DNA from: Schizochytrium sp. TIO01
Lineage: Eukaryota; Protista; Bigyra: Labyrinthulomycetes
Assembly: GCA_004764695.1 (NCBI GenBank)
Contig: SMSO01000031.1
Location: 9,712,037-9,776,036, forward strand
Length of the DNA: 64,000 bases
Direction: 5' to 3'
The notes below the pieces were generated by a model. The model saw only the letters and a program-made list of their open reading frames with translations, was not told where the DNA came from and searched no databases. A program made the position numbers and the translations under genes. Every line of letters starts with the position of its first letter. Position 1 is the stretch's first letter. Of the stretch, positions 18,605-26,840 are shown one piece after another.

Positions 18605-21600
18605 ATGTCAGACCACCCAGATGTTGTCGATGCCCTTGAGCAGCTTCGGAATGGCGCTACAACATTGTAGTAGGTTAACATGGTCCTCTCGGTCGCTCGG
18701 TCGCTCGGTCGTTTGCTTGCTTGCTTGCTTGCTTGCTTGCTTGCTTGCTTGCTTGCTTGCTTGCTTGCTTGCTTGCTTGCTTGCTTGCTTGCTTGCTTGC
18801 TTGCTTGCTGCTTGCTTGCTTGCTTGCTTGCTTGCTTGCTTGCTTGCTTGCTTGCTTGCTTGCTTGCTTGCTTGCTTGCTTGCTTGCTTGCTTGCTTGCT
18901 TGCTTGCTTGCTTGCTTGCTTGCTTGCTTGCTTGCTTGCTTGCTTGCTTGCTTGCTTGCTTGCTTGCTTGCTTGCTTGCTTGCTTGCTTGCTTGCTTGCT
19001 TGCTTGCTTGCTTGCTTGCTTGCTTGCTTGCTTGCTTGCTTGCTTGCTTGCTTGCTTGCTTGCTTGCTTGCTTGCTTGCTTGCTTGCTTGCTTGCTTGCT
19101 TGCTTGCTTGCTTGCTTGCTTGCTTGCTTGCTTGCTTGCTTGCTTGCTTGCTTGCTTGCTTGCTTGCTTGCTTGCTTGCTTGCTTGCTTGCTTGCTTGCT
19201 TGCTTGCTTGCTTGCTTGCTTGCTTGCTTGCTTGCTTGCTTGCTTGCTTGCTTGCTTGCTTGCTTGCTTGCTTGCTTGCTTGCTTGCTTGCTTGCTTGCT
19301 TGCTTGCTTTGCACGGTGTTGCTTTTGTTGTTATTGTTTTGCAAGTTTATGCAATGGCTGGTTTGTTTGTTTGTTTGTTGGATGGGTGGATGGATGACTG
19401 GATAAGTTGTCTGTTTGAGTGAGTATACATCCATCGAACAAAGAGCAAAATGACAACACAACAAAGATAAATGCTGAAAGCCAACCTAGATCACTCACCT
19501 GCATGCATGCATGCGTGCATCTATTGTAATATGAAACGTGTAATGTATTGCTTGCCATCATTCAATCAAATCGGCAGTCTTTCCTACAACGATATCGGCG
19601 ACGAGGGCGCCAAGGCAGTGGCTGCGGCGCTGAAAGAGAACCGGTCGCTGACATCACTTGTGTAAGTTGTCTACGCAACACCGCAGCTCGTGGACTTGTT
19701 TGTACATGATGCTTAGTTTGTTGTTTGGTGGGTGGGTCGGTGTTGTTTTGCAAGTTTATGCAATGGCTTGTTTGTTTGATGGATGGACACATTGTCTGTT
19801 TGAGTGAGTATACATTTATCGAACAAAGATAAATGGTGAAAGCCAACCTAGATCACTCACGTTCATGCATGCATGCGTGCATCTATTGTAATATGTAACG
19901 TGTAATGTATTGCTTGCCATCATTCAATCAAATCGACAGTCTTGAAAGCAACGAGATCGGCGACGAGGGCGCCAAGGCAGTGGCTGCGGCGCTGAAAGAG
20001 AACCGGTCGCTGACATCACTATCGTAAGTTGTCTACGCAACACCGCAGCTCGTGGACTTGTTTGTACATGATGCTTGGTTTGTTGTTTGGTGGGTGGGTC
20101 GGTGTTGTTTTGCAAGTTTATGCAATCGCTTGTTTGTTTGATGGATGGATGAGTTGTCTGTTTGAGTGAGTCCACATCCATCGAACAAAGAGCAAAATGA
20201 CAACACAACAAAGATAAATGCTGAAAGCCAAGCTAGATCACTCACGTCCATGCATGTATGCGTGCATCTATTGTAATATGTAACGTGTAATGTATTGCTT
20301 GCCATCATTCAATTAAATCGACAGTCTTGAAAGCAACGAGATCGGCTCAGAGGGCGGCGAGGCAGTGGGTGCGGCGCTGAAAGAGAACCGGTCGCTGGCA
20401 TCACTTGTGTAAGTTGTCTACGCAACACCGCAGCTCGTGGACTTGTTTGTACATGATGCTTGGTTTATTGTTTGGTGGGTGGGTCCGTGTTGTTTTGCAA
20501 GTTTATGCAATCGCTTGTTTGTTTGATGGATGGATGGGTTGTCTGTTTGAGTGAGGATACATCCATCGAACAAAGAGCAAAATGACAACACAACACAACA
20601 AAGATAAATGCTGAAAGCCAAGCTAGATCACTCACGTCCATGCATGCATGCGTGCATATATTGTAATATGTAATGTGTAATGTATTGCTTGCCATCATTC
20701 AATCAAATCGACAGTCTTGAACGCAACGATATCGGCTCAGAGGGCGGCAAGGCAGTGGCTGCGGCGCTGAAAGAGAACCGGTCGCTGACATCACTCAAGT
20801 AAGTTGTCTACGCAACACCGCAGCTCGTGGACTTGTTTGTACATGATGCTTGGTTTATTGTTTGGTGGGTGGGTCCGTGTTGTTTTGCAAGTTTATGCAA
20901 TCGCTTGTTTGTTTGATGGATGGATGGGTTGTCTGTTTGGGTGAGTATATATCCATCGAACAAAGAGCAAAATGGCAACACAACAAGAATAAATGCTGAA
21001 AGCCAACCTAGATCACTCACGTCCATGCATGGATGCGCGCATCAATTGTAATATGTAACGTGTAATGTATTGCTTGCCATCATTCAATCAAATCGACAGT
21101 CTTGATAACAACGATATCGGCTCAGAGGGCGCCAAGGCAGTGGCTGCGGGGCTGAAAGAGAACCGGTCGCTGACATCACTTGAGTAAGTTGTCTTAGCAA
21201 CACCGCAGCTCGTGGACTTGTTTGTACATGATGCTTGGTTTGTTGTTTGGTGGGTGGATCAGTGTTGTTTTGCAAGTTTATGCAATCGCCTGTTTGTTTG
21301 AGTGAGTATACATTCATCGAACAAAGAGCAAAATGACAACACAACAAAGATAAATGCTGAAAGCCAACCTAGATCACTCACGTCCATGCATGCATGCGTG
21401 CGTGCATCTATTGTAATATGTAACGTCTAATGTATTGCTTGCCATCATTCAATCAAATCGACAGTCTTGGATACAACCAAATCGGCTCAGAGGGCGCCAA
21501 GGCAGTGGCTGCGGCGCTGAAAGAGAACCGGTCGCTGACATCACTTGAGTAAGTTGTCTACGCAACACCGCAGCTCGTGGACTTGTTTGTACATGATGGT

Positions 21601-24600: not shown

Positions 24601-26840
24601 GAATCGGCTCAGACGGCGCCAAGGCAGTGGGTGCGGCGCTGAAAGAGAACCTGTCGCTGACATCACTTGAGTAAGTTGTCTACGCAATACCGCAGCTCGT
24701 GGACTTGTTTGTACATGATGCTTGGTTAGTTGTTTGGTGGGTGGGTCGGTGTTGTTTTGCAAGTTTATGCAATCGCTTGTTTGTTTGATGGATGGATGAG
24801 TTGTCTGTTTGAGTGAGTATACATCCATCGAACAAAGAGCAAAATGACAACACAACAAAGATAAATGCTTAAAGCTAACCTAGATCACTCACGTCCATGC
24901 ATGCATGCGTGCATCTATTGTAATATGTAACGTGTAATGTATTGCTTGCCATTATTCAATCCAATCGACAGTCTTTATGGCAACAAAATCGGCAACGAGG
25001 GCGCCAAGGCAGTTGCTGCGGCGCTGAAAGAGAACCGATCGCTGACATCACTTGAGTAAGTTGTCTACGCAACACCGCAGCTCGTGGACTTATTTGTACA
25101 TGATGCTTGGTTTGTTGTTTGGTGGGTGGGTCGGTGTTGTTTTGCAAGTTTATGCAATCTCTTGTTTGTTTGATGGATGGATGAGTTGTCTGTTTGAGTG
25201 AGTATACATTCATCGAACAAAGTGCAAAATGGCAACACAACAAAGATAAATGCTGAAAGCCAACCTAGATCACTCACGTCCATGCATGGATGCGTGCATC
25301 TATTGTAATATGTAACGTGTAATGTATTGCTTGCCATCATTCAATCAAATCGACAGTCTTCCTGACAACCAGATCGGCTCAGAGGGCGCCAAGGCAGTGG
25401 CTGCGGCGCTAAAAGAGAATCGGTCGCTAACATCACTATCGTAAGTTGTCTACGCAACACCGCAGCTCGTGGACTTGTTTGTACATGATGCTTGGTTTGT
25501 TGTTTGGTGGGTGGGTCGGTGTTGTTTTGCAAGTTTATGCAATCGCTTGTTTGTTTGATGGATGGATGAGTTGTCTGTTTGAGTGAGTACACATCCATCG
25601 AACAAAGAGCAAAATGACAACACAACAAAGATAAATGCTTAAAGCCAACCTAGATCACTCACGTCCATGCATGGATGCGTGCATCTATTGTAATATGTAA
25701 CGTGTAATGTATTGCTTGCCATCATTCAATCATATCAACAGTCTTAGTAACAACAATATCGGCTCAGAGGGCGCCAATGCAGTGGCTGCGGCGCTGAAAG
25801 TGAACCGGTCGCTGACATCACTTGTGTAAGTTGTCTACGCAACACCGCAGCTCGTGGACTTGTTTGTACATGATGGTTGGTTTGTTGTTTGGTGGGTGGG
25901 TCGGTGTTGTTTTGCAAGTTTATGCAATCGCTTGTTTGTTTGATGGATGGATGAGTTGTCTGTTTGAGTGAGTTTACATCCATCGAACAAAGAGCAAAAT
26001 GACAACACAACAAAGATAAATGCTGAAAGCTAACCTAGATCACTCACGTCCATGCATCCATGCGTGCATCTATTGCATCTATTGTAATATGTAACGTGTA
26101 ATGTATTGGTTGCCATCATTCAATCCAATCGACAGTCTTAGAAGCAACAATATCGGCGACGAGGGCGCCAAGGCACTGGCTGCGGCGCTGAAAGTGAACT
26201 GGTCGCTGACATCACTTGAGTAAGTTGTTTAAGCAATAGCTCGTGTACTGGTTTGTACATTAGACTTGGTTGGTTGGTCGCGTCGTGGGTTGTCTACTGT
26301 GTTGTTTTGCCGATGTTTTTCTTCGCGTCATTGCAAGTTTGTTGCGGAATTGTTTGTTTGGTTGATTGTGGATGTAACAAAGAAGATGATAATATCAGAG
26401 AATAAATGAAACTGTACTGGCAATACTGTGGGTGCCTTTTGATGATGTGAAATTGTTAACTGACGAACGGAGTTGATGTCATTTGGTTTTTACTGATCCT
26501 TAGAATGTCCGATGAGTTGACGGATGAAATGCACAAGGAGCGCCAGTTGAATAGAAAAATTTATTCTGCAAAGGCAAGAAGGAAAATGCTTGAACAGATA
26601 TCTCGTGAGCTTCGTTGTATACATGTTGTGAACGATGCACTTTCTCTGCCGTTTTCAGTGAAGCGTAGTCTTCTTACACAAACCTGGCCTGTTAACAGCT
26701 CGAGTGAGCTGAGTTCGAAAGAGGATTATCTTTCTGCGCAGAAAGTAGAGCTTGATGGGCTGGAAGCTGCAAACGTTGCCTTTCGTGGAGCATTGGGATG
26801 TCTAGGCCCTTATATTTTGAATAAAAATAGTTCTAAATAG
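18605..26840 (+). CDS. Variable-LRR gene A: N-cap + 18 RI-like (NLRC3-like) 28-aa LRR exons + unique C-terminal domain; ~637 aa, 20 exons
   Basis: Exon 1 is 18605-18669 (MSDHPDVVDALEQLRNGATTL, donor GTAGGT). 84-nt exons start at 19578, 19940, 20325, 20715, 21100, 21465, 21849, 22234, 22628, 23022, 23432, 23817, 24202, 24587, 24972, 25357, 25742 and 26136, each bounded by CAG and GTAAGT (one GTATGT). Consensus xLxxNxIGxEGAKAVAAALKENRSLTSL. The last exon 26504-26840 follows ACTGATCCTTAG and is in frame. All introns are phase 2 and there are no stops. Confidence 0.88.
18714..19309. repeat. (GCTT)n microsatellite, ~149 units, in intron 1 of LRR gene A
   Basis: Read directly; one interruption near 18809. 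Confidence 0.97.
19330..26260 (+). repeat. Tandem array of ~385-bp units x18 (intron + LRR exon)
   Basis: Exon starts are spaced about 362-410 bp apart, and intron sequence is near-identical between units. Confidence 0.97.

Follow-up and report, generated by a model that had tools for sequence, protein, structure and literature searches.

We analyzed the terminal 64 kb (the whole stretch of DNA under study, here called the window) of a 9.78-Mb contig (C30; GenBank SMSO01000031.1, positions 9,712,037 to 9,776,036 of the forward strand) in the 64-Mb assembly GCA_004764695.1 of the labyrinthulomycete Schizochytrium sp. TIO01, in which arrays of a 385-bp tandem repeat are found within the ribosomal DNA (rDNA) unit. 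This repeat is probably the exon-plus-intron unit of a transcribed, spliced, and diversifying family of leucine-rich repeat (LRR) genes, one member of which, gene A, occupies positions 18605 to 26840 of the plus strand. The existence of a coding, spliced, and diversifying family is well supported, and a role of its products as immune receptors is plausible. A preliminary description, made from the letters alone, had proposed that the apparently noncoding spacer repeats are a gene with one LRR per exon that a track of open reading frames (ORFs) cannot display, and the exon and phase structure presented below bears this out. Its picture of one hidden gene was correct as far as gene A goes, but the scope is wider, since gene A belongs to a multicopy family with further subfamilies and with a sister family of LRR-kinases.

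The first 385-bp array (19822 to 26236; 16.6 copies with 91% matches in Tandem Repeats Finder) sits between a 5S rRNA gene (18031 to 18149) and the start of an 18S rRNA gene (30527). A pattern scan located the motif CAG, then 84 nt, then GTAAGT in 17 units of this array; the preliminary description had placed it in every unit, which holds for these 17 of the 18 units but not for the one at 24202 to 24285, where the donor is GTATGT. All 18 of the 84-nt segments are open in a single frame, with a layout of 1 nt, 27 codons, and 2 nt, so that all introns are in phase 2 and the junction codons are split 2+1. Exon 1 (18605 to 18669; 65 nt, that is, 21 codons plus 2 nt) begins with ATG and ends TA/GTAGGT, and the LRR register of exon 2 already applies to its final residues. 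The terminal exon (26504 to 26840; 337 nt) is preceded by a TTAG acceptor, encodes a helical tail of 111 aa, and closes with TAG, followed by an A/T-rich, signal-like sequence. Gene A therefore consists of 20 exons (the ATG exon, 18 LRR exons of 84 nt, and the terminal exon), whose spliced length of 1914 nt corresponds to 637 aa and a stop codon, without any stop in the exons or, by phase arithmetic, in the junction codons. The open 2/2-phase exons, their connection to an ATG exon and a terminal exon, the length of about 637 aa, and every junction coordinate that had been named beforehand match this structure.

The LRR exons of gene A, all on the plus strand and assigned by the pattern scan and the reading frame, lie at 19578 to 19661, 19940 to 20023, 20325 to 20408, 20715 to 20798, 21100 to 21183, 21465 to 21548, 21849 to 21932, 22234 to 22317, 22628 to 22711, 23022 to 23105, 23432 to 23515, 23817 to 23900, 24202 to 24285, 24587 to 24670, 24972 to 25055, 25357 to 25440, 25742 to 25825, and 26136 to 26219. 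The first, second, seventh, and last of them were searched against Pfam, and the first gave a match to LRR_6 (E value of 4.4e-6, 26.8 bits) over the gathering score. The eighth encodes a peptide identical to that of the 17th and belongs to a three-unit duplication inside the gene, the units of which share 95.5% identity in register versus 92 to 93% out of register. The last LRR exon has a variant framework in which V and W stand close to the end, like the last LRR exon of the paralogues. A (TTGC)n microsatellite stands immediately ahead of each 385-bp array (Tandem Repeats Finder); in gene A, it covers 18713 to 19309 of intron 1 on the plus strand (149.5 copies). The same microsatellite was seen in intron 1 of every family member, with lengths from 20 to 600 nt among the copies (the window and loci L031 to L050).

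Each 84-nt exon corresponds to a 28-aa repeat that starts with L-x-x-N-x-I-G-x-E-G, continues with a near-constant helix part, and ends in L-T-S-L-x; joined over the junction to the start of the next repeat, this end gives the canonical LxxLxLxxNxI core. Single 27-aa exon translations matched Pfam LRR_6 (PF13516) with E values of 4.4e-6 to 2e-3; two matches exceeded the gathering score of 23.4 bits, and the LRR period is exactly 28 aa. The repeats of gene A are LRRs of the ribonuclease inhibitor (RI) type. An AlphaFold2 model of a natural, transcript-derived homologue (P0010, 267 aa) contains six strand-helix LRRs, mostly with a predicted local distance difference test (pLDDT) score of 83 to 90, and then a long helical tail. 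The nearest solved folds in a Foldseek search with this model were the LRRs of tropomodulin/leiomodin, NLRP1, NOD2, and NLRP3, which are intracellular and of the RI type (E values of 1e-9 to 1e-6 for NLRP1, NOD2, and tropomodulin). The strand of the model is formed by exon codons 26 to 28 together with codons 1 and 2, which puts the variable positions 28, 2, 3, and 5, described below, on the strand and the loop that follows it. In known LRR complexes, the strand and the adjoining loop are the ligand-facing side. Going by the model, the variable positions would be solvent-exposed positions of the LRR.

The tail of gene A had no match in Pfam and gave only leads, all below 0.9, in the ESM Atlas, and a BLASTP comparison with the LRR-kinase of the window (gene C, see below) found nothing. 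Along similar lines, a HMMER search with the tail in 1.84 billion proteins retrieved only the family itself and two weak, coiled-coil-like matches. A tail motif of 18 invariant residues is nevertheless kept across three subfamilies that are only 34 to 40% identical. NB-ARC/NACHT and ROC-COR domains were absent by Pfam, in which the repeat exons matched LRR_6 only, the tail of gene A nothing, and gene C, in addition, only Pkinase. By inspection, neither a signal peptide nor a membrane segment was evident in the protein of gene A, and its N-terminus is hydrophilic. The hydrophilic N-terminus and the lack of a membrane segment point to a soluble intracellular protein, and the product of gene A is probably a cytosolic LRR solenoid with a helical tail; a receptor, as named in the preliminary description, would be a conjecture.

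In order to look at the family beyond gene A, we sampled 20 loci of 10 kb each plus the window, with a total of 22 gene copies, using an nhmmer model of the exon with 15 nt on each side on both strands. Frequent stops, frameshifts, or lost GT/AG borders in the other 84-nt copies would have spoken against a coding role, and the opposite was found: all 271 exons of the gene A type (271/271) were 84 nt long, open, flanked by AG and GT (with one GC donor), and in phase 2 on both sides. These exons are not mere repetitions of one sequence, as 234 different DNA sequences and 220 different peptides occur among them. No defective or antisense exons of this type were detected inside the arrays on either strand. 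The gene plan was constant in every complete copy, with exon 1, n LRR exons, and the tail exon, where n ranged from 2 to 20 among the 22 genes. The introns were far less regular in length: the 248 introns had 51 distinct lengths, and 149 of them deviated from the modal 301 nt, 110 of these by a number of nucleotides that is not a multiple of three. At the per-base indel rate of the introns, ca. 40 length variants would be expected among the exons, whereas none was seen (0/271). Exon 1 was intact in 18 of 19 paralogous copies, one locus (L032) carrying an in-frame 9-nt deletion, and the tail exon was open (105 to 111 aa) in 29 of 32 copies.

Genome-wide, the terminal exon had at least 40 scored copies among 95 candidates (85 to 100% identity), so that the gene A family amounts to several dozen to ca. 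100 genes linked to rDNA units, and many copies lie within tens of kilobases of contig ends. Two more LRR-plus-tail subfamilies, of the P0010 and P0002 types, map exon by exon at 7 to 35 kb from contig ends; their loci include G000 C35:19923-21561 and ca. 18 loci such as C30:15125-15463, C5:7433-7774, and C24:11777-12055. They may represent telomere-proximal or further groups of the LORE-TEARS, the chromosome-end repeats discussed below. At one locus (L039:2591-2964, plus strand), two divergent LRR exons with another framework were found upstream of a gene of the gene A family, one of them with an in-frame TAG.

The most distinctive feature of the exons is where they vary. Across the 271 exons, 19 amino acids were found at codon 2, 15 at codon 3, and 10 at codon 5, with mostly S or D at codon 8 and mainly N, D, S, V, or Y at the junction codon (28), while codons 1, 4, 6, and 7 (L, N, I, and G), interleaved with the variable ones, were ca. 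95% or more conserved. Nucleotide diversity was 0.55 to 0.74 at the hypervariable codons versus ca. 0.05 in the framework and 0.04 to 0.12 in the alignable flanking intron, that is, the hypervariable positions are ca. 10 times as diverse as the flanking introns. In pairs of units with 200 nt of flanking intron differing by 1% or less, 45% of the 15 hypervariable nucleotides differed, compared to 3.6% of those in the framework. Shuffling of the nucleotides within columns predicted 82 ± 6.6 stops at the hypervariable codons, and none was observed. The residues at these codons were S, G, D, R, E, N, Y, K, and Q, with A, V, L, T, P, and M each accounting for ca. 1% or less. Given that this variability is free of stops, filtered by residue, and interleaved with conserved codons, a neutral process is insufficient, as is a mutator acting on one contiguous patch, and a filter at the protein level is needed. 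A targeted mutator, similar to a diversity-generating retroelement (DGR), was considered as the main cause and dropped, as the interleaved invariant L1, N4, I6, and G7 fit a protein-level filter better. From the sequences, we infer selection for diverse binding specificities, i.e., a recognition repertoire. Of the diversifying recognition repertoire proposed earlier, the part that stands is thus the stop-free hypervariability at positions predicted to be exposed, while the repertoire would be the role that this variability suggests.

A second 385-bp array in the window (55238 to 59399; Tandem Repeats Finder) belongs to gene B (54805 to 59993, plus strand), a paralogue with the plan of gene A that encodes 435 aa without an internal stop. 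Its exon 1 (54805 to 54869) is followed by an intron with a (GCTT)n microsatellite (54882 to 55175), by 11 LRR exons starting at 55390, 55771, 56147, 56561, 56950, 57335, 57740, 58138, 58523, 58929, and 59307, and by a terminal exon (59675 to 59993) with an in-frame 3-nt deletion in the tail, all on the plus strand. The hypervariable residues of gene B are unlike those of gene A.

Gene B provided the evidence for splicing. Over positions 55180 to 60300, which contain this gene without exon 1, we compared three RNA-like sequencing runs from three studies with one deeper, DNA-like run. Contigs of the three RNA-like runs contained GT..AG joints at 55473>55771 and 59012>59307, and loose ends of RNA-like contigs left 55854, 57418, 58221, and 59390 straight into the start of an LRR exon or the first codons of the tail, while the DNA-like run had none of these joints or exon-to-exon ends over the same interval. 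In addition, the HMMER search with the tail found two ORFs of the Marine Microbial Eukaryote Transcriptome (MMETSP) collection that carry it, P0001 and P0006, the latter starting in a retained intron piece and passing through one LRR exon and the residue E predicted for the junction into the complete tail. Both are ca. 90% identical to the best sampled tails, and their source is either a paralogue outside our sample or a different strain. More distant subfamilies are represented by the LRR-plus-tail products P0002, P0007, and P0010, which map exon by exon near contig ends. Together, the joints of gene B and the structure of P0006 demonstrate splicing of internal introns and of the last intron, so that splicing of the kind anticipated in the preliminary description does appear in RNA-like runs and transcriptome ORFs, at the predicted borders of gene B and P0006. 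Given the canonical GT-AG introns, transcription is presumably by RNA polymerase II. The RNA-like runs also contained joints that skip several exons (such as 55473>59307, 55854>58929, and 55473>57341), some of them, including the first two, GT..AG, which could equally be true exon skipping or short contigs of paralogues laid on the nearest exon.

The third array of the window, with a 427-bp unit (47604 to 52738; Tandem Repeats Finder), turned out to be formed by the LRR exons of an LRR-kinase, gene C (44498 to 52984, minus strand), which has 16 exons and encodes 1310 aa without an internal stop. On the minus strand, exon 1 (52932 to 52984; 53 nt, with the ATG) is followed by 13 LRR exons from 52754 down to 47569, by a 72-nt exon (47320 to 47391), and by a last exon of 2668 nt (44498 to 47165) that codes for a helical region, for a protein kinase domain (Pfam Pkinase, E value of 1.2e-29), and for a Cys-rich end. 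The LRR exons have the same phase as those of gene A, another framework, and GTACGT donors, and they also match LRR_6. Two of them are enlarged in frame, one to 117 nt by an insertion of 11 codons (49693 to 49809) and one to 99 nt by an insertion of 5 codons (49258 to 49356); both insertions are located exactly at hypervariable codons 2 and 3 and therefore enlarge a loop on the side that faces the ligand. We counted at least 51 genomic copies of the kinase exon, ca. 44 of them full length (888 codons) and without stops at 57 to 84% amino acid identity, which is clear evidence of maintained coding capacity. For the Cys-rich end, a function as an E3 ligase was considered and is unsupported, the RING matches being below threshold (E values of 0.18 and 1). 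On the opposite strand, an ORF of 229 aa (40988 to 41677, plus strand) copies two parts of gene C, namely the Cys-rich region and the end of its kinase domain, and, from its sequence, looks like a fragment of a paralogue.

Rfam identified a complete 18S-5.8S-28S rRNA unit (30527 to 36050, plus strand), the start of a second 18S gene (from 63773), and 5S rRNA genes on the minus strand at 18031 to 18149 and 54237 to 54355, as well as four tRNA genes 3' of the 28S gene within the rDNA-linked unit (36863 to 40020, plus strand). Long ORFs of 434, 713, and 567 aa were also observed upstream of the first 5S gene, at 926 to 4737 (minus strand) and 11916 to 13619 (plus strand).

In order to put these arrays into perspective, we compared them with known systems. 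Collier et al. (bioRxiv 10.1101/2023.06.15.545109; Curr Biol 2023) described the LORE-TEARS of Aurantiochytrium limacinum as spacers without similarity in GenBank, with Group 0 units of ca. 385 bp between the 5S and 18S genes and Group 5 units of ca. 421 bp; that work, judged from the preprint, does not mention LRRs or coding. Our 385-bp arrays match Group 0 by size and position, and the 427-bp array resembles Group 5 by size, but what was read there as spacers is read here as LRR exon-intron arrays, which then make up at least two classes of LORE-TEARS. The correspondence had been suggested in the preliminary description, together with the absence of any account of these repeats as coding; it was confirmed for Group 0 in unit size and position, and we found no publication that reads LORE-TEARS repeats as coding.

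The closest parallels in gene design come from a ciliate and a brown alga. Tetrahymena has thousands of LRR genes made of arrays of exactly 90-bp exons with phase-2 introns and split junction codons, enriched in subtelomeres, the youngest of which are concentrated in subtelomeric and pericentromeric regions (PMC6564038). Both systems share one exon of exact length per LRR, phase-2 introns, units detectable as repeat families, and an exon number that varies among close paralogues, for which unequal crossing-over was proposed in Tetrahymena (PMC6564038). They differ in the exon (84 nt, encoding 28 aa of the RI type, versus 90 nt), in the host (a stramenopile versus a ciliate), and in the location of our arrays, which lie within the rDNA unit between the 5S gene and the 18S gene; besides, no LINE-like element was seen beside the units here, and the hypervariable positions have here been mapped and shown to be free of stops. 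In Ectocarpus, also a stramenopile, the ROCO-LRR and NB-ARC-TPR genes have one repeat per exon, with exon shuffling and rapid gene birth and death, and diversifying selection on the LRR domain led to the proposal of an immune repertoire (Zambounis et al. 2012, PMC3341825; PMC11378527). However, the LRR exons of Ectocarpus, 72 nt long and each encoding a plant-like LRR of 24 aa, are joined to ROC-COR GTPase domains, whereas gene A has only the helical tail and gene C a kinase without ROC-COR. Moreover, the Ectocarpus introns hold inactivated and antisense LRR exons, in contrast to the 0 defective exons among 271 in the Group 0 arrays, and its genes are outside rDNA spacers. With both systems, our genes have in common an exon of constant length with the same phase on both sides and a repeat number that varies (here from 2 to 20). 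A sign of shuffling is also present, in that the types of junction codon have been recombined with varying 5' parts of the exon.

The variable lymphocyte receptors (VLRs) of jawless vertebrates resemble the products described here in their LRR solenoid, the diversity of the concave face, and the variable number of modules. In the germline, the VLR genes are incomplete, and somatic assembly from cassettes in their flanks completes them. In contrast, genes A, B, and C are complete in the germline from ATG to stop, with canonical splice sites, and can be spliced as they stand, so that they give no support to a cassette mechanism like that of the VLRs mentioned in the preliminary description; the LRR class is also different, and there is no sign of secretion or of a membrane anchor. 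As regards fold and sequence, the nearest relatives are ribonuclease inhibitor and the NOD-like receptors (NLRs; NOD2, NLRP1/3, and NLRC3-like), with an intracellular 28-aa strand-helix repeat of the LRR_6 type, but gene A lacks a NACHT/NB-ARC or effector domain and consists of LRRs and a lineage-specific tail.

The explanation that we favor combines turnover of whole units with selection on the protein. The near-identical introns would be easy substrates for unequal crossing-over, which would add, delete, and reshuffle whole LRRs in frame. Such turnover would keep the introns and the LRR framework alike, and selection on binding at the protein level would keep the outward-facing residues (codons 28, 2, 3, 5, and 8) different. 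The helical tail might serve in assembly or docking, and the kinase-fused sister family would suggest a signaling output. Viruses, other parasites, or self/non-self cues are possible targets; the described host carries persistent mirusviruses.

A number of observations weigh against this explanation, and several of them would also be expected of a transcribed but functionless relic, that is, an old LRR gene captured in the rDNA unit and kept intact-looking by concerted evolution. The tails have a nonsynonymous-to-synonymous substitution ratio (dN/dS) of 0.95 (pairwise Nei-Gojobori, 28 intact paralogous tails), and diversity in the framework is 0.056 at four-fold sites versus 0.050 at first and second positions, without a synonymous excess, so that a classical signal of purifying selection is lacking over the short time in which the paralogues diverged. 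The location in a homogenized repeat unit also suits a relic, and the intactness of the framework and of the exons may be due in part to recent copying or homogenization. A few copies are broken: exon 1 of locus L050 is frameshifted by a 1-nt insertion, and the tail exons of L023, L026, and L028 have premature stops. The third base of codon 27 (exon position 82), which is synonymous, has a diversity of 0.66 in the 271 exons and is linked to the type of junction codon (CTT-GA, CTC-AA, CTA-TC, and CTT-GT), which suggests a few old types of exon end recombining with different exon starts and speaks for linked variants of old date or for a contribution of mutation rather than for pure selection. 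On the side of expression, the run type (RNA for 18 runs) was guessed by the tool, the RNA-like runs contain intron sequence as well, and the support for splicing covers the internal and last junctions, that of exon 1 to exon 2 being predicted from the sequence; the evidence extends to transcripts and splicing, and by Pfam gene A has no recognizable signaling domain. Nevertheless, homogenization fails to explain sites with ca. 10 times the diversity of the introns that are still without stops and nearly without aliphatics, the complete absence of exon indels while intron indels are common, the tail motif kept across such divergent subfamilies, and the ca. 44 open kinase exons of 888 codons in the sister family. 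We therefore consider a relic very improbable.

Even less credible, to the point of being almost certainly wrong, is that the repeats are noncoding spacers for the maintenance of chromosome ends or rDNA in which the LRR-like frames are incidental. According to the LORE-TEARS paper, the repeats have fixed positions at almost all chromosome ends, contain G-quadruplex motifs, and are proposed to act in end maintenance, and the introns are more uniform than ordinary introns, which implies constraint or homogenization acting on the DNA itself. However, incidental frames cannot account for the exon plan, the LRR_6 matches, the 271 intact exons out of 271, the stop-free codons, and the spliced transcripts; the DNA may play a structural role in addition to coding, and as the sole explanation such a role is contradicted. 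A different matter is whether these are real proteins without an immune function, such as internal adaptors (nucleolar, telomeric, or cytoskeletal) or proteins by which cells recognize self and non-self or mating partners. Tropomodulin and CARMIL have LRRs of the RI type that bind actin regulators, and the best structural matches here are the LRRs of tropomodulin/leiomodin; the absence of a signal peptide, membrane segment, NB-ARC/NACHT, or ROC-COR domain and the location of the genes in the rDNA unit go in the same direction. On the other hand, a housekeeping adaptor would have no need of dozens of paralogues whose diversity is saturated at just those positions that face the ligand, and the copy number, subtelomeric position, variable repeat number, and kinase-fused sisters are marks of fast-evolving recognition genes (PMC3341825, PMC6564038). 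Non-immune proteins as a whole thus appear rather unlikely, although recognition between cells of the same species is compatible with all the data. A more far-reaching extension would be an adaptive-like repertoire, in which combinatorial use of exons, by RNA skipping or by somatic or meiotic recombination between the near-identical introns, together with LRR-kinase (RING-like) partners, forms a sensing system inside the cell against the persistent mirusviruses, and each cell or clone would obtain its own set of LRR solenoids from ca. 100 germline arrays. The only hint of combinatorial exon use is the exon-skipping GT..AG joints in the RNA-like runs, and we regard this extension as improbable.

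The design of one LRR per exon was already known from brown algae and ciliates; what is new is its presence in the labyrinthulomycete lineage with an RI-type exon of 84 nt, its placement inside the rDNA unit at chromosome ends, and the rereading of published spacer repeats as coding. If the favored explanation of a coding, spliced, and diversifying LRR family is correct, the repeats by which the chromosome ends of Aurantiochytrium stand out as unusual would make up the bodies of at least two large gene families rather than spacers, the gene counts of the genome would be wrong by at least a hundred genes, and repeat masking would hide an LRR family from annotation. Hypotheses on end maintenance would then have to account for the transcription and splicing of the arrays. 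The occurrence of the design in a third lineage of the stramenopile-alveolate-rhizarian (SAR) group suggests either an old shared design or repeated invention, and fast-evolving recognition genes within the most strongly homogenized DNA of the cell would be a natural experiment on diversity versus concerted evolution. Finally, the host can be cultured and transformed and harbors persistent mirusviruses, so that a role in sensing viruses would be directly testable.

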